A stretch of 64,000 bases of DNA. Origin: Rhodosorus marinus CCMP1338 (taxonomy: Eukaryota; Plantae; Rhodophyta). The stretch is from the NCBI GenBank assembly GCA_029953675.1, contig JAMWBK010000005.1, positions 186,001-250,000 of the forward strand, given 5' to 3'. Of the stretch, positions 9,613 to 37,125 are shown one piece after another (positions within the stretch are counted from its first letter, which is position 1; each line of letters starts with the position of its first letter). Position numbers and translations under genes: made by a program. The notes under the pieces were generated by a model that saw only the letters and a program-made list of their open reading frames with translations, made no database searches and had not been told where the DNA came from.

Positions 9613-12600
9613 ATGGCGGATGGAGAAACTGAGCATGAACTTGCACGCGGTGTAGCGCTGGGTGGAGGTTCTGGAGATGGTGGAAAGGACGACAAGTCTA
9701 TCCGCAGTGAGAGTATGGAAATAGAGTTGGATGGTCCCGGCACTGAAAGGAATTTTGATTATATACCGCAAATTGACTACCAAAAATTTACAGAGCGAAA
9801 TACTGAATCCAGGGAAGCTTCAGAGGAGTATCAGCAGGTAGACTTGAAACTGCAGGATGTTAGCACTTCTGTCCAGTGGGTAGAGTCAGGAGAGAGTTCT
9901 TTTGTCCAAGCCCACTCCGTCTCCATGGAGGTTAAGAGGACGCCGTCCCAGGGCCAGGTTGAAACTGACTTTAAGGGCTTAAACTCTCCAGTTGATGGAC
10001 AAGTACCTGATGAGACGCTTCGACGGGGGGACCTGGAGCGAGCTTCGCACGAGATAAACACTGCAGCTTTGGATCGCAAAGAAGAGACGCGCTCAGAGAC
10101 AGAAGGAACTGGTGCTGGGGGGCTTGGTACAGCAGTGAATACCCCAATCGAGTTTGGAAGCATGCACGTAGAACAGGGTGACAGTGGCGCGGATCACGGC
10201 CTTGAGATTCAACCGAGCCTCGACCGAGAAAACGGTGGTGTGGACATGGAGCCAGAGCTTGACCACGGCGATCAAGACATGAGGACTGTGGACTTGGGAT
10301 CCTCAGGGCTCGGACCAAATCGAGAGTCCGCTAATCTACATCCGAATAGTAATGTGAAAGATTCGTCAAACTTGGACACTTCGGGAAGCCCAGTCGATAT
10401 GGAGTCAAGACAGGAAGCTCAAGAGGCTCAACCTGAAAGCCCGATCGTAATGCGGCCGGTTAGCCTGGATCCTCCGAAAGGCCTAGAGTCCAACCCTGAA
10501 TCTGAACCGGCTCCTGATGGGAAGTCCGTTCCTATATCGGACCTAACTGAGTTTCGGGAATTAGCTCAACTGGTTGAGCCTTTCACATCGCGCATCCTCA
10601 GGCAGGCTGCAGGGAAAAAGTATACAGAAATCAGGCATCTGGCAAGGGATGTACAAGCCATGCTCACTGATGCGGATATAGAGCAGGCGCAAGCAATTCA
10701 GACATTGCGAAAGTTTTTACTCCTTTGCTGTTCCGGAGGTAAAACTGTTAGTGAGACAGCAATAGACTGCATGCACAAGTTAATCGAAGAGCAATACCTA
10801 GGAGGTGGAAACAGATCAAAAGCTCTCGCACTCGACGAAGGAAACCCAGAACTGTTCGAAAGTTTTATCAGCGGCGCTTGTAAGGGTTCCAAGATTCGAG
10901 ACGAGGGTCTCACGTTGCGAATTGTCAGAACCCTTTTAGCTGCAGTTCAGACAGAGGCCGGTGTGCACTACAAATCGCTCCTTCAGGTTGTGCAGACGAT
11001 ATACAATGTTTACCTGAATTCGTCGTCCACCAACGTCAAGCAGTCTTCCCGCCAAGCTTTGGAAAGGATTTCGGCAAAAGTTTTCGAAGCTCTTGAAGAG
11101 AACCATCATGATGCAGCTGCTGAGAAAATGAGCGAGGTTGCGGAAAATGGGGAGCCCGACAAAGAAAGAATTGGCGTAGATGAAACGCTGTCTTTCAAGG
11201 ATGCCTATCAACTTTTCAAGGGACTTTGCAACCTATCGTCGAAACAGTTGCCATCAAGCTCAAGCACAGAGTCCATGGCTGTGAAGTGGAAACTTTTGGC
11301 TTTGGACCTGCTCAAGAATGTGCTTGAAAATTCAGGCCAGAAATTCGGAACCCATCCCAAGTTCATCCATGCGATGAGGAGCTACTTGGCTCCGTCGATC
11401 CTCTCCAACGCGCTGTCGGGTTCATTATCTGTTGTAACTTCGGCGATGGAAATACTTGAAATGGTGGTTGTTCGAAAATCTTTTAGGGCAATTCTGAAGA
11501 GAGAGATAGCGGATATTTTCCAGTCGGTTATTTTCCGGTTCCTGGAGTCTCCTACTGCGGGTTATGGCAGACGCAGGGTCGTTTTAGAAGTGCTCTCAAC
11601 GATTTGCTCGGATCCTCAAACCTTGACAGATATGTTCTTGAACTACGATTGTGATATGAACTCGATTCACGTATTTGAGCAGATGATTACGTCCTTGTGT
11701 TCAGCCGCGCAAGACGGAGTGAGCGGTCCAATCGCAACCCCGGACGAGGGCATCTCAGGAGGGGAAGCAGGGCAGCTACGCACTGAAGCATTGAAAGCGT
11801 TGGTTCTATCACTCAAGTCCTTACGAGCATGGTGCTCCTCGCTTGAGGTATCTGACGACGATGAGATTGATCCTGTTGAGCCACAGCAAGAGCTGAGCGG
11901 TGTCGGGTCAGCGGTGGAGAGATCGGCTAGCATGGCAACACCGGAGCTGGATGAGACTGCGCGGTTCCAGGAAACACTGCGGCGGAAGAAAATTCTCGAG
12001 GAAGGAGTGCAACGGTTCAATGCTAAGCCAAAAGCTGGGATCGAGTACTTGGCTTCACACGGATACTTGAATGCCACTGCAGAGGAGATAGCGGGTCTAC
12101 TGAAGAACGTTAGAGATTTAGACGCAACGGTTGTCGGCGAGTATCTCGGAGAAGCCGACAAGATGAACCTTGAGGTACTGTATTCTCTGAACAGAACTTG
12201 TAGGGCGAGCCCATGTTCATAGCGCATGCTCGCGTGGGACTAGAACGGGCACTGAATAGACCTCGATCTTGCCGCCTCTTTAACAGGTTATGAAAACTTA
12301 TACGAAGTCTTTTGATTTTGGGGGCATGCCTTTTGAGGATGCCTTGAGGGAATTTCTATCCGGTACGGAAAAAAAAAACGACATGCAAGAGCGAAGCTTT
12401 TGCGACCTGCAAGGGGTGAATGAGTTTGGAGGCGAGTACTAAGAATTCTGCCGTCACTACTATAGGATTCCGTCTTCCAGGTGAAGCTCAGAAGATCGAT
12501 AGGATCATGGAAGCGTTTGCTGGTCAGTTCCACGAAGGCAACCCTACCATCTTCGCTTCAACAGACACCCCGTTTGTCCTAGCATACTCGACGATCATGT

Positions 12601-15600
12601 TGAACACGGACGCGCACAATCCTCAGGTGAAGAAAAAAATGAGTAAAGCGGTAAGTCTGCGAGCAGCGCTTGGTTCCAGCTGATAATGAGATACTGATAT
12701 TGAAGCTCCACCCGATCATGCTAACTTCCTTCTTCGCCTTCAAGGAATTTCTTCGGAACAATAGGGGAATCGACGACGGGAACGACCTGGACGCGGAAAT
12801 ACTAGAAACAATATATGATCGCATTGTCCAGGATGAGATCAAGCTCAGCGGGGATAAGAAGGACAGGGCATCCGAATCGGCGACAGGGAACGCACTGGGT
12901 GTTGACCGGCTGTCACGGTATAATTGGCAGAACATGGATCCCCGCCAAAGAAATGAAATTTTTAAGAAGGAGAGCGAGAGAGTCCTCGCACAAGCAAAGG
13001 CACAGTTTCAAAAGCGAAAAGCGGAGGATATAGACGAGATTCCATTCTATCAGACGGCCTCCAGTGTACATATTGTTCGGTTGATGTTAGAAAACATATG
13101 GTGCCCGGTATGTGAGCAACGAAGCCAACAGGACCTGAGGATATAATCCTAAGCAAAGCACCAACACGTTTCGTTTCGTAGATTCTTGCTGCTATGTCCA
13201 TTCTACTTGAGAGAGCTGGGCCAAGCGATGTTCAAACTGTTGACCTCTGCCTTGACGGTTTCCGAAATGCCATTGCAGTCGTGGGGGTGTTTGGGATGGA
13301 CATGGAGAAGGACGCTTTTGTTTCGTCGTTGTCTAAGTTCACCCTTCTGAACTCAATCACTGACATGAAGAAAAAGAATATAGAATGCATCAGAGTGCTG
13401 CTCGCGATTGCGGCATCCGAAGGCAGCAATCTTGGTAGTCAGTGGACCTGGGTATGTGTACTATTCCCACGAATAGATTCGTGCTGGTGCATTCGCTCCT
13501 ACAACTCGGTATTAGCAGGAACTGAAAAGGAAGGTGCTTCTACTGGGGCAGATGATTCGCGCGATTGTTCAGCTGGAGCAGATGCGAGCGGTAGCTGCCA
13601 ACATACCGAACAAGCACAGGATTCGGAACAAGTCGCCCGCCAGCAAAGAAGAGTCGATCGGCAACCAGAAGGTTACTCGAGATGGTGATATGAGCACTGG
13701 TCCGCCGGTGGATGCCAACACTGTACTGGTAGCTAATTCCATTAAGGACAGCGAGGTGGAGCATATTTTTAGCAACTCTCCATCCCTCAGTTTCGCCGGA
13801 TTCTACGATTTGTGTGCCGCTCTCTGCAAAGTCTCTGCCGAGGAGCTCGCGGAGAGCGTACCTGTTACGTACTGTTTGCAGAAGCTTGTGGAGATTGTCC
13901 TTTACAATATTGAGGAAAGGCAGAAGAAGCAGTGGCACAGGGTTTGGGAATTGTTCAGCCCTTTCTTTGGTAGCGCCTTAAGTGAGTTTACCCTGAATTG
14001 CTTCGAGTTCCCCGTTCCCAGACATCGAGAGCACTCATTAGAAGTATCGCGTTTATTCCTTGTAGGTCACAAAGATAAGGACGTATCGCTGTTCGCGCTA
14101 GATCGTCTTAAACAGCTTGTCTGGAAGTTCTTGGAAGCGGACGAAAGACATGCATACGAGTTCCAGTTCTTGCTTCTCAAGCCGTTTGAGTCGTGCTTTT
14201 CGAGGACAACGGCTCACCCAATACAAGAAACCGTCTTGACATGCTTGTCGCAGGTTGCTCTGGCTCGAGCGGCGAATGTAAAAAGTGGATGGAAGTACGT
14301 GCTTCTCAAACCCGAACTTCTCAAACGCGAACCTCTCCGACTTTTTCGTATTACAACATTCACCGTCATGTCTTCCTGTCTTCATGTCTTCCCCTCCTAG
14401 GCCGTTTTACAGCGTCGTGGGCATGGCAGCAGATAGCAAGTCCGAGGAAGTCATGAAGTACGCGTACCAGATCTGTGACGCCATAGTAAGAAAGCATCTT
14501 GGAGTGATCGAGGAAATGTTTGTCCCAGCGATTTCCGGAGTTGGTGAGTGCTTCCGAGATTCTCGGGCACGTCTCTCAGCAGAAGTTAGGACAGGTCTCT
14601 GAAAGTAGCCCTGTTGCGATTCTCGGCTAGGTGCATTTACGAGGACTCCGCTGTCATCTGCAGTAGCTGTCGCTGCATTGGATCATTTGTCAATAAGATT
14701 TGTGTCTTTGCTTTCCGAAGGAAAGGCCTTACCAGCAGCTCGCCCTTTGCAGATTGAAGGGAAGGGTGAATTGATTTTTACGGAAACCGTTGATGCACAT
14801 ATTCAGACGTGGTTTCCACTCCTGATTGGGGTCAGCTCGGGAATAACGTCTTCCTTGGCTAGTGTTCGAGTTACTGCCACGAGCGCCCTCTTCCGTGTAC
14901 TCTCAGAGAATGGTGATAAGTTCTCCTCCGGATTATGGACGCTAATTTACCGAGGAGTACTGGCTCCGATATTTGACGATGTTAAGCATCATCTAGGTAT
15001 GGTCGACAGAGCTCCCCATGTGATGCTACCCACCTCTAATGAATTCTGACAGCAGGGCCTACTTTCCTTGCTCCGTGGGCGCTGTCAATGTGGTAGAGAC
15101 GAACGCTGGTGGTGGTTCCTCAGGGTGGGCGATGTCCACTGGCTCCTCTGCATTGAGGCAACTTATTTCAGTTGTTCTGTTGAATGAGAACACAAGAGGT
15201 TTGCTACCGGACGTTATTGGGCTCATCTCTGGCTGGATTACACAGGTATGCTGAATCATGGAAACGCGCTCAACTTCTCAGTTACTAGAAACTTTGACGA
15301 ATTCTGAATTCCGCATGAATTCCTGTCATGGAATGGATTGCTGGTTCGTATGTTAAGTCAACGGAGGCCGTAGCTCGGGAAGGTGTTATTGTTTTCACTT
15401 TCTTGCTGACTGATGGAGGACACAGGTTTTCTGAGGATGACTGGCAGCAGGTCACATCCGTATACCGTACTCTGTTCAAGGAAACAATGCCGGTCGAAAT
15501 CATGGGTCCGCAGGACGGCATTGAGAGCGTCGCAGATACATCACACGTCGAAGCGGATGAATCGGACCGACCTGCTCCCGTTGACTTCAGGATGGTCCGT

Positions 15601-16509
15601 TCAAAGTGTGTTGTGCAGTTGCTCCTAGCTCAGTCGGTCCTCGACACGGTCGTCATGAATTACGGTCGGCTATCGGCTGCACAGGTGCTTTGCTTGGCGA
15701 ACCTCCTGGAAGAGAGTTATGCATTTGCTCGTGATTTTAACGCGAATTCGGAGCTCAGATTTGCTCTTTGGCGTGCCGGTTTCATGACCCAAGTTCCAAA
15801 CTTGTTGAAGCAAGAGACAACCTGCTTGCAGGCCTATGTTCAGATTCTATTCTGGCTTGCTGCGGATGAGGGCTCGGTCGAGGGAGCAGCTCCTAAGGAA
15901 CTGCTGCTGGACACCTGTAAGATGTTCCTGGCAAAGTACGCCGAGGTTTGCAGCTCACCGCGCGGAAAGAATGGCAGAGATGATGCGAGAGAACTCGGCG
16001 CGCGAACTGCGATTGCAATTTTCATGATTGAGGGCTTCGTGCATGTTTCAGAGGAAATCTTTGAAAGCGTTCTGCAGACCTTTTGGGGAACTTTCGTGAC
16101 GCTTCTCCGGGTTAGCGAGTCCAGGAACCTAAGAGATGCCGTTTGTGATATTTTGGACAAACGAGTATCTTCTACACTTGTTATGAACTCGGAGGGGTCG
16201 TTCTCACCAGATCCCAAAAGGCCTGGTGACCGGCGAGTGCTAAATTTCACAGTGAAGGATCCGAACAAGACTGAGCATATGCAAAAGGCCGTTGAAGAGA
16301 TGGATGGTGTCATATCGGCAGAATTCGGTGAGGACCGAAAGAACTTGCGTGTTCTCGGCAGTGTCCCTGTCGCTGATGTTATTAGAAAGCTGGACGGTTT
16401 TTCGTCGGGTTCTGTCTTTACCTCAGGGGGAGCCGCACCATTCGTACAGCTGCAATCCCGACCTGTCATCACTGAGGAGCCAGACTCAGGTCCAGCATCT
16501 TCCACTTGA
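9613..16509 (+). CDS. BIG/Sec7-family ARF guanine nucleotide exchange factor (DCB, HUS, Sec7, HDS domains), multi-exon
   Basis: HUS box FLNYDCD. Sec7 domain [13 protein letters not shown]...VGEYLGE...[18 protein letters not shown]...[20 protein letters not shown], with the Glu finger intact. HDS motifs [11 protein letters not shown] and [21 protein letters not shown]. Several GT-AG introns; not every boundary was resolved. Confidence 0.93.
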
Positions 16510-18806
16510 GGGCGAAACAGGATGAGACACTGCATCGGAGCACTCTGAACCTGAGTCAGTGAATTGGGTGTCGCGGGCATTCTGACTTCGGCATTGCTGA
16601 TCCTTCTTAATCACTCACGGATTTTACCCTCGATGGGTTGGTTGAGAAATCACCTTCATGGGAGCACTGAACAAGAAGAATTTACACTGGGCAGATATGA
16701 GGGAGTATGTAATGTGCATTAAAACCACTACTCACAGATTGAGAGTCAATAAACATATTTTTTTACCGAGCAATCCTGCATGTTCTGCGGTCAGCACCAT
16801 TCCCGGGCACGCCTCCGCCGCAAATCCACGATAGGAGAGTGCGGGAACACTGCTAAGTCTCTTTCCTTGTAACGCCGTCGATCGGGTAAAACGTAGTCCC
16901 GAGAATGCTCCATACTGGATGAATGCCCTAAGAACGTTCAATACGCAGAGAGATCAGGCTTCTATTATGCGAGGCGAAGACCTGTTGACGCCGTGGTAAA
17001 CCTGAAGCCAGTTGGTCTTGGGTACGTCAATCGTCCATGGCCGTAATCTCTCCCCGAGCGCCCAGCCCATTTGTTGGCTGAGCTGTTCACCGCGTTATGA
17101 TATGTTCTGTGGCTTACGTATTCTGCGCTGGAGTTCAGCTCGCGTTCACCCCTTGGCAGACACATTTGTCCACCCAGCGCAGGATATTTTACATGCCTTA
17201 GCAGCCGATATCCATGTCATTGAAACATGTACAATTGTAATTTATCGTGATACTACATTCTGAATTTCTTCCGTACCCTAGCCCATCGACACTCTCCCAA
17301 CCAACAAAAACCGACAATTGCACTTCTGAAGTTGATATTGGGTTCTGCTTTGATTGGTGTAATTCCACTGGCGCTCACAAGAATATCCCCCCTTCCTCCC
17401 TGCTTGTGTGTGGATTTTGACTGTGCTTAACCCCCCCCCCCTCTCCTCTCAAGCCTTTTAATGGCTCTTCTGGTAAGGCCATCAACCCCCTCGAAAATCA
17501 AGCACTTTTTATACAGTTCTCCATTCCACTCAATAGGTTTCCTATCAAACGCTTGATGGACCCCCATTGCCCTTGGCTAATTCGAAAACGGAAATCGCCG
17601 CCAAGATGGTTTTACCCTTCCCCCCTGCTTTTTCGAATGAGAGAAAAGTTTAAAAACTCATGAACAGTTCAGGATAATCCTCCGAATTTCAGGGACCACC
17701 AAATTGAAAAGGATGCAGCAGTTTCCGTTCGGAATCGCGGGAAGCTATTCACCGAATACACTATCACACGAACGGAGCACAACCCCCTCAGATGGGGACC
17801 AACAAGTGCATTGAGCTCATTTTTGCTATATTTCTCGAGCGCCGAGCTGCTTCCTTCATCCTACTAACATCCACCAGACCAAAGCCAGCCCCTTGATGTT
17901 GTCCGATTCGGACATTGATTATGCAGGACAAACGACCTATTTTATAAAAACAAAAAAGCGCATACGTATAAAATGGATTTATTTCTAGATCTGGAATTCT
18001 CGTCATCAATTTGGGCGTTGTGCGGAAACTGATTTGTGAGGTTGGCTGCGTCCAGAATCCGACATCGAAGCCAGGTCCCAAGAATGCTGGTCGAACTCGC
18101 CACAAGCGCCAGGAAGCTTTGGACATATCTTCAAGCAAGTCGCAGCCACCGAAGCTTTGAATCAGCGCCCAAGCTGTTCTTCATCCCACAGCCGTGCCAA
18201 TCCGGTTGAGCGAAGGGATGAGTCAATATTTGCGTAGGGGAAGAAGGACTTCGCGCCTTTCGTAGGGCCACAAAATAATGTATTTATGTGCTGCTGTTGG
18301 TTTCATGGTGATAAGACAAAGGAGAATCGATTTTTGATTATTTTATCGTAGATACTTTTGTGCGCTGCGTCTTGGAAGTTGGGAGGGAGTTGTAGTTTTA
18401 CTCGCAAGGGCGTAGCGAAGAAGCTTCCTCGGAGTAATTCTTATGCGAGTTTTTAATCTTGTTTAGGGTGTAATGGGAGGTTCTCGACCCTCACGTTGGG
18501 CTCGTGATGACTCTCATTCGTGAAAGCTAGTGTGTAGTATGAGTGGCTCCTGAATGCAAACGGGTTGGCGGCAAGGGCGAGAGAATCCCTGGCCATGTTC
18601 GCTGTGGACGACGCCAGAGCAGCAATGGATCCACGCGCTGTTCCTCCGGGTAAGCCAGATTCTGAATGACTCTTCAACCGCAAGGAATTTGAATCCGCGA
18701 ACTTAAGCATGGCATTTGTCTCCTAGACAAACTCAAGAATGGAGACGAGGAATCTGCCGGTGGCAAACCGACACGGCTGCCACTAGGAACCGTCTCTATA
18801 GGTCAA

Positions 18807-21800
18807 ATGGATGGGGTTGAACATAGCTCGGATACCTTCACCCATGAACGCCATGGTCACGAAGATCCGAACAGCATCGAAAATGACTTGTCACCGCCGA
18901 ACAGTTGCGGCGTATTAGAGTCCAGTCCTGACCTGGCTCGAGTCCTGGGAGAAATTCTGCATGAATGCAGCCTGGTTACGGACAGAACAAAAGTCGCAAG
19001 GTTGAACAGGCTTGACCGCATAAAAGCTATTGACTCACGGATACATGCGAGAGAGGCAGCCTCGAACGCTTACAAATTTAGTACTGGACAGTCAAGCACG
19101 GGCAATGAAGCACTCAAAGTTCTTCATCACCCGAGCCCGGCAGTCCCAGGAATTCAACTCTTCCCAACTAAGAGAGTAGAAGCGGCAGCAACTAGACTAA
19201 TTGAGGAATCCTCAAAGGTAAGAGTTCATTCATTGATGTTGTCCTGTTTTCTAAGCGAGTTGATCTGATATCATGTGAATTCTAACTCGGCGTCAAGGTC
19301 GTACAAGAGGACCAAACGTTGAAGAGAGCCACTGAAGTCACCAAGCGAAACGCGATTATTGCGAGAGAGAGACTTCCCAAACAACCCGAAGCACCGCGGT
19401 TGAAGAGTCACTGGGATTTCTTGCTAGATGAAATGCTCTGGACGTCAACCGATTTCAAGGCTGAGCGTCAGTGGAAACTGGACTTGGCAGCCAAGGTTTC
19501 CAAGATTATTTCCGTATACTGGGAATCGAGGGTTGCGAAGAGACATTGTTGTGACAGCGAAGACTCCACAGCCTGTCAATTGGTGGCACGGCAAATGGGG
19601 GCGATGGTCGAAGACTTCTGGGACGAGGCGTCTTACCTTTGGAGCCCGAGACAAAAGGGAGAGGAAGATGAGTCCTCGGAGAGCACTTCCGACCGAAGCT
19701 GTGCTCTTGTGAAAAGAGAGACCGTGACCACTAGTAAATCAGGAGGACCTGGGGTAATTGTAGCTCCGGAAATGGAGGGAAGCGTCAACGCACCTGGCCA
19801 GGTTGAGAACGAAAACGTTAGGGATCTTGTCGATGTGCTAAAGGAAGAAGCGGCTATGGATATTCGAGACGTGCTGAAGAGACGAGCGGTTGATCTGGAT
19901 GATTATTGGGACGAAACGGGAGCTACGGTTACTGGATCGGGGGCTGAGGTCTCTGACGAACAAGTGCAAGGGAACACGAGCAAACCCTCGACGAGCGGTG
20001 TGGACCAGCGCGAGGGACAACCAACTACCGACTTGAGCCATATGGCGAAAATCTCCCCGGCAGCATCAGTGCACAATACCTCGAAGGCGGCGGAGTTAAA
20101 TCATGGTCCAGGAATGAATCATGTTGATGTAGACATTAAGGATGTTCCTCGAATTTTTGCTGAACACCGGCGACGTTCAGGACCAAGTCTCAGCGCGTGC
20201 CAGACGTTCCCAACCTCAGAATTGTTCCTTGCGAAGCCCGCAGATTCGGAGGACAGGACTCTAGCTAACCACACTAACAAGAGCCTTCTGAGAGGGACTG
20301 TTGACGACTCTGCGGACAATTTACTCGTTCGCTCTTTAATGGACTTGCATTCGAGACGACTGGGTTGTATTTTGAGTAGCAATTCGGCCGAGACAAGGCG
20401 CGATGCAGTAGGGCGATTGCTGCTGACGTAAGTTTATGTGCGCCTACTCTCCGTGCCGGAATGATAGGCGCTGAGTCGCGGTTGTATCTTCTACTACTTC
20501 GTTTTTAGGTTGGCTGAAAGCCGAGGGCGATGGGGTCCGCATCTCATAGTAGTGCCTTCGGCAACCATAGGCTTGTGGGAGCGCGACTTACTTTCCGTAG
20601 GATCTGCGTTGGTAGCAATTATTTACAAAGGCGACGAACCTATTAGGAGTCGATTGCGGGTTTGTTGCAGTAGTCCACTCTCTTTTAACGTGATGGTTGC
20701 TCCGTACCAATACTTTGTCTCCGACATGAAGTGGTTTGTGAAGCGAGCTTGGGATCTGGTTGTGCTGGATGAGTCTCAACGGCTGAGAAATTACGCAAAG
20801 CTGGTGCCGCTACGGAGGTGGTCTACGATCCTCCTGCGGAACCCGGATCCTCTCGCGACAAACGTCCCGGAGCTGTGGGCTGTTGTGAGGGTTCTTCTGC
20901 CTGAGCTTCTTCAAGACTCGAGCATGCGAGCTGCTTTCAAATCTGCCAGTCAGGACAGAGGAGAATTCGTCAAGCAACTCCAGGATGGTATTGCTCAGTT
21001 CCGGGTAGGGACAGACCTCTCCCCGGAGACAATCGACTTCTCGGAAGAGAGTGTAGAATGCGATATGTCATTGAGGGAACGAAAGGTGTATCAATCTGTT
21101 GTACCAACTGGAGAGAAGCTCTCGGATTTAAGTCAAATCCAGATTTTGAAGACACTGAAGGGATTGAGGCGAGCTTGCAGTCACCCCTTCCTGATTGGTG
21201 GGGTTGGAGATAGCTGTACAATATTTCAGGATCCACTGGGAATTGCGCTCCCTGTATCGCTGTTGGAAATTGTGCGGAGGCCACAGAAGAGATTGCTTCG
21301 GATGGACAGTCCGAAGAGTCTTTTGCTAACGCGAGATCTTGTTGCACATACTCGTGAATCCGGCTTTTTGGATAGAGTGGAGAACCTTGAAGAGGCTGAT
21401 GATTTGCAGATAAGGAAGCGTCGTGAATCGGACGCCCAGAATGGGAAAGAGGGAGGACTCGATACCGTACATGCCAAGGACTCGCTTGGAAAAGACACTG
21501 CGACGAATAGCAGAGAAAGACGGGTAAGTTACTGTCGGTACTGAATACTTGTTTCGAAGCGAGAGCTTTGTCCGGCTAAACGGTGCGGTTGTCCATTCTG
21601 AGCAGACGAAGGGGCGACTTTGCGATGTGGAGAGTTTGGAAACGAGCATCGCGGAGCGGTTAGGTTTCTGCTTTCCCGGTCATAATATTCTACATTTTTT
21701 TGTAGAACCAGTCGCAGCCGGAACGCCAACTCTTTACACAATGGACGGAAGAGACGAAACGGCGGGTTTGGAGGCAGCCTTGATTGGAAAGAGTGCTGAG

Positions 21801-24800
21801 CTTTTCCCTGCCGGGGACTCCAACGTGCACTATCTACCTAGAACACCACCGGTATTTCAGCTCTTAAGTACGAAGATACGATGCCTTCTGCGACTTCTTG
21901 ACGAATTTGAGTCGAAGTCTAAGCGTTGTATGGTCGTCACAAGAATACCTGGTATGGACGAGCTGCTTGAGCGCTTCTTTGCGGCTTCAAGAATCTCTTA
22001 CGAGACAATCGACGCATCTATGTCAGCTAGAGAGCTAGAAGACGTTGTAGAGAGGGTCAACAACGTTGGCCCGCGATGTTTATTGTATGCGGCTGATTTC
22101 CCAAAGTGGTTTCACGAGGTAGCTGTTCGAAACACGACGGAGATAGTCTTGATGGATGGCCCGGACACTGGGGCCTTTGTCCATTCCATCGTTTCCATGC
22201 TGGACTGGTCTGGAGTGGGCAACGAAATCACTGTACATTCATTGACCGTGAAGGACACCGTGGAAGATAGAAGGATTTCTGAGGCACAGGACCTGAAGCC
22301 CAGTCTCTTTTCACAGCTTACTCGTCGCGCAGACGATATTTGCTCTTCGGTTGCGTCAACGCTGAACGTGGATGCGGAAGTCTTGAGGCTTAGTTTGCAA
22401 TCGCTTGATCATGGTGTCTACGAGAAGCGCTTCATTGACAATGAGAATGTTTGGGGAGCTTATCGCAGGGACTTTGCTGCCTTTGAGTCGCCACCGATGG
22501 AAATCGATTTTTCGCTGCAGTCGGCCGAAGATTGTGTGGAGCCCAATCAAATTGAGAGGTACCTCAAGCGAGTTCTGCTACTGATGACCACTTCCGAGGA
22601 ATACGGCTGGAGCCCTGGTTCCGCGAAGATCGTTGACAAACAGCAAAAATCAGACTGGGGAATAGTTTTTGACTATTTGAAGTCCTTAACATCAGCCACG
22701 ACGACGAATACGAATCAGAACTTGCAGTACGCTGCACCGCCTCTGTTTTACACGATTCAGAAGACTGCGGAAGGAATGGAACAGCTGAGACGAGCGCTTT
22801 CGCGGGAGGAAGAGGAGTTTCGTGTTTACAGCGCTCCTCGTAGCTCTGGTAGTGATGAGCTCTTGTTTACACCCTTTGGAGGGACCTGGTCAGCCGTGGA
22901 GTCCGCCGAAGACCTCGGATTCTTTCCTCATGCCTACCATAGACTTGCAAGGACGAATCGAGTTACACGCAGGCAGAAAGAGACCAGTGCTGCTCGCTTA
23001 AAGGCAGAGCAGCAAGAGAAGGCTTCTGCGGAGCTGAAATTGTCGGACGCAATGAAAAATCCGATAAAGACCAAGGGGCAAAATGACTCGTCCGATGTTA
23101 AACTCGGCACTGCCAAAGGTAATGCGTTTGTGGCCCTATGCGGAACTGGACCACGAACTTGGAGATCATTGCTGACAGCTGGTTTTTCCAAACATATCTC
23201 CACTCAAGGTCATCTAGGCGCAATCTCCAGAAAACAAGTTCGAAAGTCCAAGACGAAGAAGGACAAAGGAATTGCTTTGGACTCCTCGGGGCTCGGGGCA
23301 CTCTCTAGGGAGCAATATGGTGAGGGAACCTCTGCGTTGGAAGGGCGGTCATCTGTCTCGCATGCCTCACTTGATCAAACCCTAGCCGGACGGAAATCTG
23401 TAGCTGAGCTGTCGTCAGAGGCTATGGAGCCTGTCGTACCCTGGACTCCGGAGGAAGATGCTGAAATCCTACTCGCCTGCGCGAAGTTGGGTTTGAACAA
23501 TGCGCTGCTGTGGGATTGGATGAGGCTGGCGCCCAGTTTCCACGCAGGCTGCCGCCAGTACAGATCACCACGACTGTACGCCGAACGGTACAAGCTGCTA
23601 GCGGGTAGAAAAGTGCAACCGTCAAACACCAACACGCCTGAGCAAGAGGTAGGTGGTGAAGCCTTTGTTGCTAATTCGATCACTTTCGATGAAGAGTAAG
23701 TGCTGACTCCTTTCTCATGCCTCTCCGCTGACTTCGAAATGAAGATCGTCTCCCTGCATCTTGACTCGATACTGAACAACGTCGAGAAAGGGAAAAGAAA
23801 AAAGAGTACCTCGGCGGCAATTGGGGGACAACCACACCCCTCTCAAGCAGCTGCGGCTGCCGCTGTGAAATTTTTGCCGGACAGAATTCCTGGACCATGG
23901 GAAATTGTGCAGCGGTTCAAGCCGTCGCAATCACACGTTCCTGGTCGGAAAGTCGAAGCTGCTGTGAGCAGAAAACGTCCGTTTCTATTTATGAGTTCGT
24001 ATCAAACCGAAACTCGAGGAGTTGGCGGAAACGCTGCAGTAGGCAGCCGCCCAGGTAGGAATTGCGTCCACTGCATGGCTGATCCAGAGACAGCACCAGA
24101 TTCGCCTTGTCCCAAACTTTCCAAGTCAGCGAGAATCCTGGGACGTCTTGCTAAGCTAGACCTCTGCTATTGACTCTTGTGGTTGTTCTAGTCACTAATG
24201 CCAATTCACACACGGCAGCATCCGGAAGCTCCGAGAGAACAGCTTCAGGTAAATCTGTGACAACGTTAGGAGCCTCAGTACCTCTTGCTGAATTTCTTCA
24301 CCGGCATCGCGTTTTTGGGAAATCATTTAGGAGTTGTGCAGGCACGAGCCCAAGCAACTGGAAAGAGAAGAAAAAAGGCCTCGAAGATGACAGCATCTGA
24401 TACCCGAGCGTTAGCTACCGGACAATCTCAGCCGGATTTAGCATCCGCTGCTGGCATGGGAGCCAGGCGAGGAATGCAACCAGCCTCGATTAGTCCGAAT
24501 TCGAATCAAGGGGTCCTCAAACACGACGTTGGCGTGGGTGGCTTTCAAGGTTATACCGGCGGTGGCATGATGGGTCTCAATCCTAAGGCCGTGCAATCCG
24601 TGCCCCAGCAATCGACGCCCTTCGGATCAGTTGGCATAGAAACCCATAGAGTTGGGACGTGGGGAACGGTGGGGGATTCCACCCCGATGACGAAAGGCAA
24701 TGCCAGTGGCCGAAGTGTGACTGGCAGTCGGGGAGCTGGCGGGCATGGTTCTTCAACGGCTACACGAGGAAGCTCTCGGGGACGCGGAGGATCTCGGGGG

Positions 24801-25280
24801 GGTACCAATCAGCGGGGAGGAGGGTCGCGCTCAGCTGTACATAGCGGACAAAATAAGGGAAAACCGGCTCTTCCGCAGGCTGCTAATAGTGCCGATCGTA
24901 TGCAATCGCTTTCGATGCAGCGATTTACGGCAGTCGGGAGAGGAGCGAACTTGCCCCATATCGGAGTAGGTGCAGGAAGGGCCATGGCGCAAATGGGAGC
25001 TGGAGGACCCCAGCAGACTTTTTTGCAAGGCCGGGGGGGTGGTTTGCAGGTCAACCACGGTTCCCTTGGAAAACCAGCAGTTGATCGGAATAAGAAAGCA
25101 CCTGTCGATCGTGGCGGGACACCTCAGCCTTTGGAAGCTGACCGAACGCCCGTGAGAGGTTCGAATGCACAGGCAGATGACAGTCGCAGTACCCACGGTG
25201 CGCTGAGTACTGGTGAAGGTCGTCCATCCAGCAAGGGAGGAAGTATCTCTCCGGGAAAACCGGTTGAAAACGATGATTAG
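18807..25280 (+). CDS. SWR1/EP400/PIE1-family protein: HSA domain, degenerate SNF2-like ATPase lobes, SANT/Myb domain, Gly/Arg-rich tail; multi-exon
   Basis: HSA: [25 protein letters not shown]. SNF2-like: WGPHLIVVP, WDLVVLDESQ, LRRACSHPFL, KIRCLLRLL...RCMVVTRIPGMDELLERF. SANT: PWTPEEDAEIL...QYRSPRLYAERYKLL. 3' exon boundaries are uncertain. Confidence 0.82.
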
Positions 25281-26664: not shown

Positions 26665-29600
26665 ATGGCTGCCCGTGCCTTCTCCAGGTCATCATTCTCG
26701 AGGTCGAGATCGATCAAATCATATGGCTCGGAGGCAATCGATAAGCTCACTATCTTGAGGGATTTGCCGAAATCACGGTATGCGACCAGACCAGCAATCG
26801 TGGTCATTCCGCCACCCGGCTCGACCGCAAAGCCGCGGCAGTTCTCTCACATTGACATTTTCAAGATGGTGGAGAACGTTGCACATAGTTTGCGAGAGAA
26901 TGGTGTGCGCCCAAAAACAAAGGTTGTAACCGTGTTGCCACCCAATCTCGACGGAATCGTAGCCTTCTTTGCTTTGCAATGGGTGAACGCGGTAACCATC
27001 GCGTTGCAGCCCGATATGAGCGTGGAGACAATGCTTGAGCGTGTGAAAAGCAGCGGTGCTGAAATCGTTATAACCTCAGACGTTATAGAAGACGAGCGAG
27101 AGGCAAACGAGGTTTACCAAAAGGTGGTTCGCTTGAACTCTGAACTAAACGCGCTTGCTTGGCATGTCAGCTACAATAACATCTCAGGAGTTGAGCTTAA
27201 GACAGGCGGCAAATCGTTCGGGGTTCCTGCGTGGCGAGGGGGTTACAAGGACTTCACTGTAGAACCAACAGAGTTGTCCGTGTATACATTCTCTCCAGGC
27301 GCGGGCACAGATACGACTTTGGCCATAGGTCTTACACATGAAAACATCACCGCAGCAGCGAAAGCCTTCGTTGCTGCCTACGAACTGTTCGACGGTGAAG
27401 AGATGGTCATGGAAAGCAATTCCAGGACCGTTTTGACGTCAGACTTTAGCAGTGTGCAGGGAATATTGACTCTTGTCAGTTCCTTCTACGCGGGAGGCTC
27501 CTTGATTATGTATGAAAATGGCGAGTTTCGGCCAACCGAGTTCTGGGACCTTGCGCTAGCGCATGAGTTGACGTGGGTCAGCGTCAACCAAACTCAATTC
27601 AAAGTGCTGTACCACAAGAGAAAGGAAGGGGTTGTTCCGAGCAAGCTGAAATATATTAGAATATGCGATGACGATTTCCAGGACACAGCCGAGCAGCTCT
27701 CATACGAGAAAGTTCTTGGCTGTCACATTTTGGAGTCTTATGGTCCACCGGAGGCGTCTGGAATCGTCACCACTGAGGTTTTTAGTGAGGAGGTGCGAGG
27801 TACTCTAGGTGCAGCCGTGTTGGGATGTGAAGTAGCCGTCTTCGCCGCGGACAAGTCCAGACTAGAACAAGACGAGGAGGGCGATGTTGCTGTTCGTGGC
27901 TTGAGCGTTACATCCGGGTTCTTGAACGACGAGGAGGAGACAGCGTCGAGCATAATCACCATTAAGACAGCATTGGGAGACTCGACTTGGTTCCTGACCG
28001 GAGACAGGGGGAAAGTGGACGAGAGCGGGAGGCTTATCCTAACTGGCAGTGTACGAGGGGCGAGGGCCCAAGCTCGATTGCGGAGGGATGTGGAAGCCTC
28101 ATTCGAAGACTTGCCGCCAGAAGTAGAGGAGACAAAGGACTTAACTGGTGCTCCAGTTGCAGTCGCGAACGCGGTGGCAGCGGGTGCTGGTGCGACAGCG
28201 GTGCTAGCGAAGCCGGCTGACGACGCGAACAATGAGGGGAGACAGATTCGACGGCTGACTGAGGATGACATAAAGAAGGTCGGGCCAGATTGGTGCATTG
28301 TAACGCCGTTTCTCGGTATTCCAGCTGAAGATGACGATGTAGAAGAGAAGGTCGTTCTGATGAGGCGTGTATCGTCGGATGAGGTTGTTGAGATCTCGGA
28401 TCTCCCTGATTCAGTACCCTTGTCAAGTGGCCAGAACGATTCCTCGCAGAGTGCAAACATTGCCGCAGCTGAAGCTGCCGCAACGGCTGCCGCTGCAACA
28501 GCAGCTGCCAACGCAGCAGCAAGATCACAGGCAGACGGGCAGGTTACAAAGAAGATAGTCAAATTCGGCGGTGTTACTTACGAATATTTCTATACTCATG
28601 AAGACGAGGAGGAGATGTTGATGGAGCTCCTTGGCGATGACCATGAAGGCTCAGAGAAGAAGCGCTCTGTGAAGCTTCCACCAAAGTACCAAGGGGGATA
28701 CTTCACTGAAGAAGCAGACGAGAACGATAGGATTCAAGTAAGGATAATGACCACAGGGGAGGCAACCCAGTTTCGCAGGAAATTGGAACATGAGTTTGCC
28801 GCAAAATTGGAGGAGGAGAAGGGCAGAATGCGTACAGAATACGACGCTCTTCTTGCAGCGGCACTAGTTGAACAAGACTCCCAGTTTCAGCAAGTTTTTA
28901 CGGAGCAGAGCAAGAGTGTGCAAGAGGAGTACAACAGGAAATTTGACGAGGAGTCTCAGCAACAACTAGTTGAAGTTCAGAAGCGGTTGATAGAAGAATC
29001 GAAAGCCCGAAAGGAGATCTACGAACAGCTTTTGAGCGAGAACGGAGAGAAGGAGTTTTCGCAGGCGGAGAATACGCTACAAAGCAAAAGAGAGAAGGAT
29101 AGAACAGAGGTATTGGACCAATTAACTGCAATGAAGGGTGAGCTCACATTCGGAGTGTCATCTTACTTTAAGGGCGTGGATAATATGGATGATGTGGAAG
29201 CTTCAAAAGGGGGCGTATCTCGCTTCGATCGGACTGGAGACGCGAAGAAACCAGCTTTGCTGATGCTCATCAACGACCCTGAAAAAGTTCGTGACTCTCG
29301 GCCAGAACTCGACGCAGAGTTTCTGAAAAGAATGCAAGAAGCGAAGGAAGAGGAGAGCAGACTGTGGCGCGCTAGCGTAGTTGCCGACCTAAACAAGTCC
29401 GCGTTCTCGGTAATTCGGGACATTGAGGACAGGCACGCCATGGACCAAATGAGCTATGCAAAAATGCTGGAGAAGATTGAAGGGTTAAAGAAGACGCAGA
29501 GCGAGATGGAAGAGAACCTCTCATTGGCGAAGCAAGTTGAGGTGGACCGCGCCCGCGAGCTCGGTGAAGCATTAGCCGAGGAAAGAAAGAACATGGGAGC

Positions 29601-30444
29601 GCTCTCAGGTCGACTGGAAGTCGAAGCCATGGCGTCGAGAACTGAACCAGCGATCGCGACCACGAAGACGGACACTCTGGAAACGGCCATATCGGATACT
29701 ACCACCAGTGCCCATCAAACCAGCAAAGCAGCGTCAGAGACTGTGGCTTCGGTCCAAACCATGACGGTGGCCAGCGACAAGGCAATAGTTCAGGCAAGGA
29801 CGGCCTCAACAGCCGCCACAACCGGGTCTGACGCGACGGTTCGAGCTGCGGATGTTGTCAAGTTAGCGGCAAACCGTCAACCCGAGATGAAGGAGACTGT
29901 ACTTCGCGAAGTACTCCCTGGAGACGTTGTTGGTGAAAGGTTCAAGAAGAGAACCATTTCTGTGGATCTTCGATCTATTGACGAGGCCCTCAAGGCACAT
30001 CCTAGCGTTGCCGATGCGAGGGCCTTCACCACTCCAAATCGGAAGTCCACCTTCGATATTAGCGCTGTGGTCCAGTTGAAGGAAGGTATGCTATTTGCTC
30101 GCCCAACTGACCCGTCATTTTTTAGTGCATGCACCATTACCATGTTTTACAACCACTCATTGACGAACTCCTGTTCTCTTTGGTGACGCTTCGTGGTTGC
30201 AGGGGCTCGAGCGAGCGAGGCTTGGCTGAAACAGCACGCTTTGAATACCTTGCCAGTCGCTTCTGTACCTACTCGGTTCTTCTATACGACTACTTCGATT
30301 CCTCCGGGGAGGAAACAATTGGCCTGGAACCCTGATCTGCAGTTGTTCACAAATATCGCGGGTGAATCTCAAGCATACATTCCACCCAAGAGAGTGGAAA
30401 GAGCAGAGATCCACCCCGCCGAAACGCCGCAGGCCACGGCATGA
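26665..30444 (+). CDS. AMP-binding (ANL superfamily, AAE3/Pcs60 oxalate-CoA-ligase-like) protein with a ~630-aa insertion; probable pseudoenzyme, about 1220 aa
   Basis: Exons 26665-30085 and 30203-30444 (intron 30086-30202, in frame). The N-domain has LTHENI, ILESYGPPEASG and WFLTGDRGKVDESGRLILTG. The small C-subdomain SIDEALKAHPSVADARAF...AVVQLKEG...WLKQHALNTLPVASVPTRFF only resumes at about 29950. Confidence 0.85.
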
Positions 30445-30976: not shown

Positions 30977-33900
30977 TCAAATGGTCAACTCCTGATCGAT
31001 TCCAACAAAACTATCAGACATTATGTACAAACGGAGCTTAGCTACATTTTCGATCCTGCTCGATAACAACAGGTGCGTCCGATGGACCCCGTGATCCAAC
31101 TTTCGTGGGAGACGCTTAATCGCATAAAGCTCATCTGCAAGAGGATCGCCCAGAACGAGATACCATGAATCTTTGACAGTCATTTCCTTGCGTGACGTAA
31201 AGGACGTAGAAACTTCAACTCCCTTTGCGTCCTCTTGCAATCGAGTTTTCACAGTTGGTATCGAGATCCGACTCCTAAACAGCATGACCTAAGAGAAAAA
31301 GAAGAACCTCATATATTAGCTCCAGCCATTCAGAAGAACAAGGTGAGTGTTCCTTTCCGTACCTGATCAATGCTTTCGCGGGGGATCTTCCTCTTACGCA
31401 ACTCCTTCTCCAGCTCTGCCGCCGGATAAAACAAGAGTTCGGGAACACAGACAATACCAATCTTCAGGAACGCTTGGCGTACGCGATCGCGATGCGACTT
31501 GTTGACGAAACCCAGTGGAAGAGGACTTTCCGAAGCCCACTCGCTCTGTGTTAACTGCTGCGCCAAGTGAACACATCTCAGCGTAGTATGTAGCATGCCG
31601 CTTTCAGCAGCTACATCCATCATCCCCTGCAACACTCGATACATGTTGTCTTGGACGATATTTGTTCCATAGTCTACGGTCGGTAAAGGAAGTCGCGAGA
31701 TCTGCGCAACAAGAAGGAGACGAGTTTTGACATGTGGGGAAAACCAGTCCGGGACAGGGCTCTTTGGAAGGAGCTCTTCCGCGGGGGCGTCGCGGTCAAC
31801 GAAGTTTTGATACATATCCATCCACAACTCCTCCGCTAGACGATCTTCATTGTGGCGGACGGGAACCTCAGCGAACTCGTCAGCATCAGCCAGCAAGTTG
31901 AGCAGGGCCCCATCTCCGATCGACCTGGACAGCCTCCCTGAGAAGTGGTGCATCGTCCTGTGAGAGAGATAATAGTACGCTGCAATATGCCCAAGAGGTA
32001 GTGGGCGAAGCAGGAAAGTTTCCGCCCCCGCACAGGAGCGGCTCTGCTTTGGATTCGCGATGTGCATCTCCTGTACAATTGAAGAATGCTTGTTTGAAAC
32101 CCCAGGTTCCAGCGAGCGTACTTTCTGTGCCTCTTCCAGTACTGAGAAGGGCTCAACTACTGCGATACACCCAGCAGCCACCAGCTTGTGCAGAACCGTT
32201 TCCACCAAGTTTGACAAAAAAGTCGAAATCGAAGAAGCTGATGGCTTCTCCAAACCGTAGAAAGAAGGGTTCATAAGCAGCCGACGGAAGAAATATGTCC
32301 AAGTTAAATAGTCCATCGCATCTTGTGTTGTTCTAATCGTCTCGCTCGCAATCTCCGCATTAATATGATCAGCCAACTGAGCTGGGAGCGATGATTCAAC
32401 CGGGAAAGCCTCATACAGGAACTTCTTGTAGAAGCCCTTTCGAGGTTCGTGCACTAGCAGGACGGCGAATGCGCGATCATCGAATTGGGGACGCCCAGCT
32501 CTCCCAATCATCTGAAGAACGTCGGTGAGAGGCATATCAACGTATCTGTGCTGTTTTGCGTCGAAGAATTCAGTTCCTTTCAGCACTACCAAGTGCGCTG
32601 GGAGGTTCACCCCCCACGCGAGCGTACTCGTGCTTATCAGAACTTGAATCTCGGCAGACGCAAACAACGCTTCCACAGTGGCACGATCGGACTCTGCCAG
32701 ACCAGCGTGGTGCATCCCTACTCCAAACTCCAGGGTCTGTCTTAGTGATTCGTCCTTCACCGAGGGAAGAATTCCTTCCAACGTGCTCTCGTTTGCTGAT
32801 CTACCTTGAGCCAAGAATCGCCTTGGGGACCCGTCAGCAGCGGCGAACTTAACCAGGTCCATCGCCGTGAGCCTGGTCTGCCTTCTTGAAGAGACAAAAA
32901 TCAGGCAAGGCTTGTCTGGAGAGTATCTCAAAATTGCCGCGTAGCTCGGGCGATTCATGGCCATCATTCTCGGACAGTAGTGATCACCGGACACCCCTTG
33001 TATATGTACCTCACAAGGGACTGGCCTCACCGAAGGACGGAAATTGAACAGTGATTCTCCAGGGCGAACTCCGATCCAATCGCCTAGCTCGCCTGGATTC
33101 GCCAGCGCTGTCGATAAAGCAACAATCCGAACAGATGAATCCAGCCTCCGAGCCCTGGAAACAAGCACTTCAAGAACGGCTCCCCTCTCGGAGCACAGGA
33201 GATGAACCTCATCAATGATCAATAGGGAAACGCGGCTTACATAAGCCCGTTGTCTCCAACCTCGAGTAACGCCGTCCCACTTCTCAGGTGTCGTTACTAC
33301 AACATCCGCTCTGCCTAGCTCAGATGCGCTGCTTTGTGCGTCTCCAGTTAGCTCCACCACTCGCTTTCCGAGTTTCCGCGAGAGGCGGTTCTTCCAGTCC
33401 TTAACACGCTCTCGGACTAGAGCCTTAAGGGGCGCGACGTAGACAACAAGGTCCTTCGGGCGAACTCGAAAGGCCCTCAGAGCAGCCAACTCCGCAGTTA
33501 CAGTCTTCCCTGATCCAGTTGGAGCCCCAACAAGCACGTTGCTGTCCGTGTGGTACAAAGTCCAAAACATCTGAGTTTGCAGAGCGTTAAAGTATTCAAA
33601 CGAGTACAGCGATAACACCGCTGGATCAGTGCCCAACGCGCTCTTCGGCAGAGGTCGCAGATCCAGTAAATCAGTGCTTATTGGATGCTGCTGCGGGAGA
33701 GTAACGCCTGCAAGAGACAATGTCACGGCTGTCCCCGCTCCGTGCCACCTCTCGGACTCAACGCTCACAACGTAGTGAGAAGACGGTGGGTCAAAAACCG
33801 GGACCATCAGCACCAGCGACAGTGGGTTCAGCTCGCTCAAATCCTTACACTGCCTCCGGGAAAGGCTAATGCGCTCAGTGTGGTATATTCTGTCATGCTC

Positions 33901-36900: not shown

Positions 36901-37125
36901 AACTTCCCATTCCTCGTCACCTAAGGTAAACTCCTCCAAACCTTTGTACGCGGAAGACAACGAACCTGTCCAGTGCGTATCTGACGTACGCTGAGCATAT
37001 GGTTCTGCATTTGTTCCAGGACGAAAATTCGATCGAAGTGTGACCCACGCTTCGTAATCAAACCGCATTCCATCTTGCAGCTCTCGGAGGAGCTTTGAAA
37101 ACCTCACTACTTCGATGCTGGTCAT
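30977..37125 (-). CDS. ASCC3: ASCC3/Slh1 (Ski2-like double helicase cassette with Sec63 domains)
   Basis: Exons 37125-31363 and 31288-30977. Two cassettes, APTGAGKT/DEVH and APTGSGKT/DEVH. The signature HYCPRMMAMNRPSYAAI...LIFVSSRRQTRLTA favours ASCC3 over Brr2. Confidence 0.9.

Follow-up and report, generated by a model that had tools for sequence, protein, structure and literature searches.

A 64,000-nucleotide stretch of Rhodosorus marinus CCMP1338 DNA (contig JAMWBK010000005.1, positions 186,001 to 250,000; hereafter the window) carries a gene for a PIE1/p400-type chromatin protein, NDN08_001013, whose SNF2 motor can, judging from its residues, almost certainly no longer bind or hydrolyze ATP and is a predicted pseudo-ATPase. 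The locus is a live gene and not a pseudogene. We consider it likely that this functional, expressed paralog works as a non-catalytic platform of the Eaf1/p400 kind, with the SNF2 fold retained as structure. The finding touches the question of what purpose the p400-type ATPase serves inside TIP60/NuA4-like complexes, and that of the historical relationship among SWR1, NuA4 and TIP60.

NDN08_001013 is listed by NCBI as a 1986-amino-acid (aa) "hypothetical protein" of R. marinus, whose CCMP1338 assembly comprises 31 Mb and 8392 genes (PMC10250338), and carries the UniRef label "HSA domain-containing protein". It is the exact translation of a nine-exon locus at 18595-25280 on the forward strand; the exon model came from testing combinations of donor and acceptor sites for agreement with the annotated protein. 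Its eight introns, of 77-137 nt (82 nt for intron 4), all have GT-AG borders. A preliminary description of this DNA had bounded the gene at 18807-23700, which proved too short, and the stop codon at 23699 that ended this feature, built on open reading frames (ORFs), falls within intron 6. A model that joined ORFs across a 40-nt intron (21524-21563) and closed at that stop was overturned by the transcript alignment and the annotated protein. Along the polypeptide the order is HSA, SNF2 lobe 1, an insert of ~190 aa, SNF2 lobe 2, a FFPHAY motif, SANT and an Arg/Gly-rich (RGG) tail. The p400/PIE1/Domino arrangement is therefore present on one chain (HSA aa 192-293, lobes aa 509-1138, SANT aa 1478-1534), and Pfam, the alignments and the SANT helices predicted by AlphaFold2 agree with the preliminary description in this respect. 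The closest solved structures by sequence (HMMER) are SRCAP (1.7e-36), EP400 (3e-35) and Swr1 (2.6e-18). The gene and the parts of its motor are as follows.

18595-18649, 18727-19217, 19298-20427, 20509-21523, 21606-23118, 23209-23648, 23745-24054, 24192-24248 and 24331-25280, forward strand: exons of the whole gene, whose translation equals NDN08_001013 (P0001) exactly
20276-21196, forward strand: SNF2 lobe 1 and helical subdomain, aa 509-788, interrupted by intron 3 (Pfam SNF2-rel_dom; AlphaFold2)
20297-20320, forward strand: Q-motif remnant TVDDSADN, where relatives have LR(D/P)YQ, with (D/P)YQ replaced by DSA (alignments A1 and A3)
20363-20401, forward strand: motif I (Walker A) remnant GCILSSNSAETRR, with AETRR for GLGKT (ungapped HMMER alignment to SRCAP and EP400, and MAFFT)
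20531-20563, forward strand: motif Ia region WGPHLIVVPSA, kept; W, G, H and L are invariant in alignment A3 and P nearly so
20768-20779, forward strand: motif II DESQ, Asp-Glu kept (DESH in a sister strain, DECQ in the distant ortholog L002)
20831-20863, forward strand: motif III remnant LLRNPDPLATN, where relatives have LLLTGTPLQN, with TGTPLQN replaced by RNPDPLATN (alignment)
21846-22328, forward strand: SNF2 lobe 2, aa 978-1138 (HHalign; AlphaFold2)
22080-22127, forward strand: motif V remnant LLYAADFPKWFHEVAV, where relatives have ILTTRAGGVGLNL (phmmer and HHalign alignments)
22182-22220, forward strand: motif VI remnant HSIVSMLDWSGVG, where relatives have QAQDRxHRIGQ (HHalign)

Two RecA-like SNF2-type lobes, homologous to those of SWR1, SRCAP and EP400, are retained. 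Lobe 1 is matched by Pfam SNF2-rel_dom at E 5.2e-18 (65.6 bits against a cut-off of 24.9). Helicase_C was not found in the protein by Pfam, and lobe 2 is marginal by phmmer (E 0.27-0.4 to INO80). HHalign, comparing a profile of three dead sequences with a profile of 52 intact relatives, identified lobe 2 at 97.5% probability (E 5e-12, 149 colinear columns). The AlphaFold2 model of aa 496-1145 has a predicted local distance difference test score (pLDDT) of 75-90 over lobe 1 (beta-alpha-beta) and 55-79 over lobe 2, with RecA-like alternation of strands and helices. Foldseek matched this model to SRCAP (3e-24), INO80, the EP400 RuvBL lobe and SWR1, with E-values from 1e-20 to 3e-24. Pfam, HHalign and the structural model together confirm that both ATPase lobes are recognizable, as first noticed in the preliminary description.

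The catalytic residues have been erased from this fold. In motif I both P-loop glycines are gone and the lysine and threonine are each replaced by arginine. In this superfamily, changing the Walker lysine to arginine is a routine way of abolishing ATPase activity. The TRAGGxGxNL of motif V is absent, with AADFPKWFHEVAV in its place, and HHalign sets TTRAGGVG.NL opposite AADFPKWFHEV. Motif VI, AQDRVHRIGQ in relatives, faces IVSMLDWSGV; the arginine fingers are Met and Trp, in a stretch without any arginine. The degenerate Walker A and the missing arginine fingers had both been pointed out in the preliminary description (the former at about 20360-20402), and both observations hold. The same description had also read DESQ in place of DEAH as a sign of a dead enzyme; the reading of the residues is correct, and the conclusion drawn from it is not. 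DESQ by itself is no evidence of death, because SRCAP-type relatives have DEAQ, EP400 has DEMQ and the catalytic Asp and Glu are kept. The case for a dead enzyme, as read from the alignments, is built on the Q motif and motifs I, III, V and VI. GxGKT, DEAH/Q, GTPLQN and DRxHRxGQ are encoded in no frame of 18.5-25.3 kb. By architecture and descent NDN08_001013 is classed as p400/PIE1-type, and by motifs I, III, V and VI it falls outside the active Snf2 enzymes.

The dead motor is expressed in a sister strain with ~90% nucleotide identity to the window at this locus. A 6668-nt JGI contig (L001, Ga0186320_100084) encodes, as a single uninterrupted ORF, a protein (P0002) that is ~87% identical to NDN08_001013 over a full-length alignment. 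The contig matches the window in eight blocks of 86-91% identity, and since the breaks between them fall at introns 1-6 and 8, L001 is a spliced transcript. It keeps intron 7 (24055-24191; ~5249-5256 of L001), giving a protein of 1660 aa as compared to about 1986. Near motif I, L001 contains no additional exon, and the protein it encodes has AKTRR and DESH. Two ways in which the dead motor could have been illusory had been named in the preliminary description, an alternative exon that restores the motifs and an untranscribed pseudogene. The transcript speaks against the former, being colinear with the exons of a locus in which no frame encodes canonical motifs, and the spliced transcript, 1986 open codons and selective constraint speak against the latter. 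Comparison of the window with L001 (Nei-Gojobori) gave a ratio of nonsynonymous to synonymous substitution rates (dN/dS) of 0.23 overall, 0.11 for HSA, 0.23 for lobe 1, 0.43 for the insert, 0.17 for lobe 2 and 0.06 for SANT. For both lobes combined dN/dS was 0.20 (bootstrap 95% confidence interval 0.13-0.30, maximum 0.42 over 2000 replicates), and thus the dead lobes are under purifying selection about as strong as that on the remaining protein.

When aa 190-1150 were used as query in an exhaustive HMMER search, which covered 1.84 billion representatives, a second, distant dead ortholog came to light. After P0002, this search returned two fragments (P0011 and P0124), both on a 7352-nt Logan contig (L002, run SRR22824290) presumably derived from another stylonematophycean red alga. 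By tblastn the L002 gene is colinear with NDN08_001013, has the same domain order and is ~30-41% identical by piece (~36%). Frame shifts between the pieces fall near R. marinus intron sites, the junctions being approximate, and the matched pieces are open. L002 has a conserved HSA, a motif I reading GCIVVADRSLERR (SLERR), a DECQ motif II, LLRSLSELAKS at motif III, and a motif VI region, QSLLDLIAKSD, without arginine; it also has a FFAHAY motif, SANT and a downstream HVSGRKVE motif. Because L002 is equally dead, loss of the catalytic motifs predates the split of the R. marinus and L002 lineages, and the protein has been kept since. An Arg-Arg pair at the Walker A Lys-Thr position (20393-20398) is common to the three dead sequences: AETRR in the window, AKTRR in the sister strain and SLERR in L002 (near 2300).

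An intact paralog was found through the exhaustive representative search and a cluster look-up. The representative most similar to the red-algal sequences, P0073, is without the FFPHAY motif, and its 90% cluster holds P0292 (1893 aa), labeled EP00189_Rhodosorus_marinus / MMETSP0011. P0292 has HSA, SNF2-rel_dom (299 bits), Helicase_C (88 bits), GILADEMGLGKT, DEAQ, SGTPLQN and QDRAHRIGQ, and the identity of its lobes to those of other red-algal PIE1-like proteins is a typical 71-73%. From JGI, the same cluster includes a sequence on Ga0186320_100353 from sample 3300017118, the sample that yielded the dead transcript L001. The GC contents of the two paralog transcripts, overall and at third codon positions (GC3), are 0.51/0.52 and 0.52/0.53. 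Since both transcripts occur in that sample with like GC3, one Rhodosorus culture expresses a working SWR1-type motor together with the dead-motor protein. The search for a second, intact SWR1, proposed in the preliminary description as a check, was thus positive in the sister strain's transcriptome. In word-index searches, queries from red-algal PIE1 brought up no protein of Rhodosorus, but neither did they bring up a Porphyridium protein (P0017) of their own query alignment, probably because low-complexity words crowded the candidates, so this result is uninformative. The same holds for a FFPHAY plus SANT profile run against JGI metagenome contigs, where five unrelated loci were among the matches listed and L001 itself was not. 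The P0292-type transcript isoforms encode 1487-1893 aa and all end in retained introns. MMETSP Rhodosorus transcripts of both paralogs often retain introns (L001 at ~5249-5256; L010 at ~4844), which shortens the predicted proteins; this could reflect partial splicing in the RNA sample or regulated retention.

Outside the motor, the following elements were located.

19325-19630, forward strand: HSA domain, aa 192-293, with the Pfam core at 19379-19525 (Pfam HSA, E 6.4e-12)
21197-21845, forward strand: insert between the lobes, aa 789-977 (192 aa by alignment), interrupted by intron 4, at the site of the RuvBL-binding insert of the INO80/SWR1 family
22896-22982, forward strand: post-ATPase FFPHAY motif VESAEDLGFFPHAYHRLARTNRVTRRQKE, a signature of red-algal PIE1-like proteins that is also present in L002
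23436-23606, forward strand: SANT/Myb-like domain, aa 1478-1534 (partial Pfam Myb_DNA-binding match)
23934-23957, forward strand: HVPGRKVE motif in exon 7, with G and K invariant in alignment A5, conserved in L002
24723-24833, forward strand: Arg/Gly-rich stretch in the last exon (exon 9 translation)

HSA is an actin/Arp4-binding helix in the related proteins Swr1, Eaf1 and EP400 (PMC4358907). Its first half in NDN08_001013 (ARERLPKQPEA..HWDFLLDEMLW) is nearly the same as in red-algal PIE1-like proteins. The two Rhodosorus copies have decayed in complementary parts of this region (19325-19630 vs aa 160-226 of P0292): the first half (ARERLPKQPEA..HWD.LLDEM.W) survives in the dead copies, while in the intact copy that half has diverged and the post-HSA half (RDVRHFWKQI) is preserved. 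In other Snf2 enzymes the post-HSA half contacts lobe 1. Such complementary retention would fit a division of labor. Alignments A4 and A5 show no variation at the FFPHAY-motif residues E, D, F, F, H, A and Y. The SANT region scores E 1.3e-4 (22.5 bits) with Pfam Myb, slightly below the cut-off of 24.4, and AlphaFold2 models it as three helices with pLDDT 86-91. Its profile matches c-Myb at 4.6e-5 and the yeast Eaf1 SANT at E 0.08-0.16. Foldseek with the C-terminal model gave nothing below E 0.09, the top hit being the EP400 chain of the TRRAP module (E 0.1), followed by generic Myb/SANT folds; this result therefore supports the designation "SANT-like three-helix bundle" alone. The Arg/Gly-rich stretch may be missing from some forms of the protein, because L001 keeps intron 7 and so ends early.

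At 192 aa the insert is shorter than the inserts of intact red-algal relatives (218-282 aa) and of a fungal Swr1 (227 aa), and it was modeled with pLDDT below 50. Profile-profile comparison of the insert by HHalign was not significant, aligning 12 columns around AERLGFCFP. In INO80/SWR1/TIP60 structures the insert threads the RuvBL1/2 hexamer and lobe 2 leans on the hexamer (bioRxiv 10.1101/2024.07.30.605802).

The nearest intact matches to NDN08_001013 are red algal, namely a Compsopogon caeruleus MMETSP0312 transcript (1.4e-48), a Hildenbrandia rubra relative and Porphyridium purpureum KAA8492875.1, annotated as PIE1 (E 1e-48 to 1e-36). These PIE1/p400-like proteins have HSA, split SNF2, a QRYAL-like motif, FFPHAY, SANT and PGxKxE in the same order as NDN08_001013, but keep every catalytic motif that it has lost; GKT, DEA, TGTP.QN and QDR.HRIGQ are invariant in 28 of the 28 aligned. 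Identity to NDN08_001013 is 30% in lobe 1 and 20% in lobe 2, as compared to ~75-78% among the relatives themselves. The non-ATPase signatures common to both sides are ARERLPKQPEA..HWD, the QRYAL-like motif, (E)AED..FFPHAY..R.Q.E, the SANT tryptophan and PG.K.E. In neighbor-joining trees with 100 bootstraps, the three dead sequences grouped at 100% in both trees, nested on a very long branch within the red-algal clade; the PIE1-like clade of red algae had 100% bootstrap in the first tree. One tree placed P0140 next to the dead clade (73%) and the other placed Compsopogon there; the intact Rhodosorus copy took this position in neither (1%). These data indicate that the dead gene is derived from a red-algal PIE1-like gene, with no finer placement. 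Two red-algal contigs have eIF-6 following the intact PIE1-like gene on the opposite strand (L005, 8496-9245; L007, 10593-11762). As eIF-6 is not present in the 64-kb window, gene position gives no evidence for or against orthology. Red algae have been reported to be without Eaf1 and Swr1 homologs (PMC6089883), a claim that the many red-algal PIE1-like sequences identified here contradict.

Comparison to known systems places NDN08_001013 close to p400 and Eaf1 in different respects. Human EP400, a subunit of TIP60, has the same HSA-ATPase-SANT order, is among the best PDB sequence and fold matches, and has partly decayed motifs of its own: LLLIDAPLHN (III), STHSRATGVSL (V) and QEWCDRIGR (VI). 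However, EP400 keeps GLGKT and one motif VI arginine and has an EP400_N region that is absent from NDN08_001013, which arose separately inside red algae. The same three decayed strings occur in whale EP400 (P0210). A p400-like protein of the frog Ascaphus truei (P0132) reads GLGKN and QSWCDLIGR, and an HSA-SNF2-SANT protein of the ichthyosporean Chromosphaera perkinsii (P0156) has GMGKD and no surviving motif VI. For SNF2-rel_dom and Helicase_C, the Pfam scores in bits are 297-299 and 88-95 in intact red-algal proteins, 226 and 39 in the frog protein, 202 and 45 in whale EP400, 175 and 23 in the ichthyosporean protein, and 66 with no match in NDN08_001013. The Rhodosorus protein would appear to be the extreme of a gradient of p400-type ATPase decay, and the motif comparison suggests that catalytic constraint has been relaxed repeatedly in NuA4-type scaffolds.

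Drosophila DOMINO-A, likewise a p400-type scaffold, does not need its ATPase activity for histone acetylation, and H2A.Z exchange is carried out by another product, DOM-B. A DOM-A mutant in Walker A (K945G) still supports H4K12 acetylation (PMC7239659). The DOMINO splice isoforms share one intact ATPase, whereas Rhodosorus has two genes, with the ATPase of the scaffold copy decayed. Human EP400 has been argued to be architectural, with current data not supporting histone exchange by human TIP60 (bioRxiv 10.1101/2024.07.30.605802); other studies assume that EP400 exchanges H2A.Z. With the K945G mutant and the architectural argument for EP400 as precedents, an ATP-independent role is credible. 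HSA and SANT without ATPase activity are likewise found in yeast Eaf1 and Arabidopsis EAF1, which exist next to a distinct Swr1/PIE1 motor (PMC4358907). Between its HSA and SANT, Eaf1 is devoid of SNF2 lobes, while NDN08_001013 keeps lobes and insert under selection; because a dead SNF2 fold lies between the two domains, it is not an Eaf1 by architecture. Swr1 and SRCAP, the latter being the best match among solved structures, combine HSA with a split SNF2 ATPase that contains a long insert, but they are active motors without SANT; their counterpart in Rhodosorus is P0292. A literature search found no description of NDN08_001013 or of any "pseudo-ATPase" Snf2 protein.

We propose that an ancestral red-algal PIE1-like gene with HSA, ATPase and SANT was duplicated in the lineage leading to Rhodosorus, where one copy would have kept the motor for H2A.Z exchange. 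The dead copy may then serve as a non-catalytic platform like Eaf1, Drosophila DOM-A or, in one recent view, EP400 in TIP60. Following the pattern of Swr1, Eaf1 and EP400, an actin/Arp4-type module would sit on its HSA, and its SANT and FFPHAY region would be turned toward the acetyltransferase/Tra1 side, on the model of Eaf1 and EP400. Between them the SNF2 fold with the 192-aa insert could form a rigid hub, possibly a dock for RuvB-like proteins, as the preliminary description had suggested. In its mode of action the protein probably resembles Eaf1.

Several points weigh against this proposal. The NuA4 membership suggested in the preliminary description is inferred from architecture, and the tie of the SANT domain to Eaf1 or EP400 specifically is weak, at E 0.08-0.16 by sequence and 0.1 by fold. 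The insert has kept its position and length, yet homology to the RuvBL-binding insert is not demonstrable from its sequence. With the motif II Asp-Glu and an arginine at the Walker lysine still in place, residual nucleotide binding is conceivable. The intact paralog is known from the sister-strain transcriptome and not from the CCMP1338 genome, to which that strain has ~90% nucleotide identity at the locus. P0292-type proteins may also carry SANT, since their transcripts end in a retained intron, and this would weaken a clean split between motor and scaffold. Finally, the position of the dead clade in the neighbor-joining trees is unstable and long-branch effects are likely, and the trees do not date the duplication.

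The same features could serve a protein that stays within the SWR1 pathway, as a decoy competing for actin/Arp4, Swc4, Yaf9 or RuvBL, or as a non-catalytic partner in the same complex. The retained HSA and SWR1-type split ATPase fold would suit such a scaffold or regulator, as would the divergence of the HSA of the intact paralog, chiefly in its first half, and in known systems Swr1 and Eaf1 bind one common module through their HSA (PMC4358907). A pure decoy, however, would not need SANT and the FFPHAY region, which are the most conserved parts and belong to the Tra1/TRRAP side in Eaf1 and EP400, and we regard this role as rather unlikely. It is improbable that the fold was recruited outside NuA4 and SWR1 altogether, for example as a non-hydrolyzing binder of nucleosomes or DNA. 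Lobe 1 elements that contact DNA in relatives, such as the motif Ia region, are kept and an RGG tail is present, but each conserved non-ATPase element is common to red-algal PIE1-like proteins and stands in the same order, which points to continuity of partners.

The retained motif II Asp-Glu, and the Arg-Arg that each of the three dead sequences has in place of Lys-Thr, would also fit a protein that is still an ATPase, or a nucleotide-binding switch, acting through non-canonical residues. We consider this very unlikely, because neither R. marinus nor L002 has retained the P-loop glycines, the Q motif, motif III, motif V or either arginine finger. The lost motifs, the long branch, the 20-30% identity of the lobes to relatives and the intron retention in some transcripts would each fit a decaying duplicate that is still transcribed. 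Open codons throughout the 1986, dN/dS values whose confidence interval in the lobes lies well below 1, a ~36%-identical ortholog that is open over its matched pieces in the same order, and the retention of structural core residues of the lobes have already largely refuted this idea, to which we give hardly any credence. An artefact of gene prediction or assembly, with the real motifs in a wrong or missed exon, was suggested by the difference between the ORF-based and the true model, in intron 4 and in extra introns. Its probability is now negligible, because an independent transcript assembly from another strain has the same exons and dead motifs, L002 is dead too, and no frame of the locus holds canonical motifs.

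The non-catalytic platform has a wider evolutionary implication that we hold to be possible rather than probable. In Rhodosorus and at least one distant relative, a merged PIE1/p400-type gene may have been resolved into a SWR1-like motor and a NuA4-type platform with a fossil SNF2 fold, a structural hub under selection and a living intermediate on the way from p400 to Eaf1. In the usual picture Eaf1 and Swr1 were fused into p400 (PMC4358907, PMC6089883). This locus would show the opposite, duplication and loss of motor function, caught before deletion of the lobes. Eaf1-type platforms could then arise by duplication and motor decay, and not only p400 by insertion of a motor into Eaf1. The preliminary description had suggested that the protein could be an intermediate; the term is apt for a lineage-specific derived state inside red algae and fails for an ancestral form, given that the dead clade is nested in the red-algal tree. 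If the proposal is correct, the locus is a natural experiment on the ATP-independent function of the SNF2 module in p400-type scaffolds. Erasure of the catalytic residues in at least two lineages, with the lobes under purifying selection, provides independent evolutionary evidence for a structural role of the fold.

Other genes were recognized in the window. On the forward strand, an ORF at 5231 with a P-loop looks like a Ran-type small GTPase gene. Upstream of the dead-motor gene, three large forward-strand ORFs at 9613-16509 with DCB, HUS, Sec7, HDS and BIG2_C domains look like one multi-exon BIG/GBF-type Arf guanine-nucleotide exchange factor. A single forward-strand ORF of 1173 aa (26665-30186) has an AMP-binding domain of the acyl/aryl-CoA ligase type at aa 41-420, followed by ~750 residues that are partly of low complexity and rich in charge, an unusual combination. 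On the reverse strand, a 1931-aa ORF (31330-37125) has two DEAD/Helicase_C/Sec63 cassettes and an SNRNP200 winged helix, which identify it as a Brr2/ASCC3-family helicase; genes of this genome have about three introns on average, and this one has none. Also on the reverse strand, 51455-52540 encodes a member of the triose-phosphate/phosphate translocator family (Pfam TPT, E 3.5e-97).

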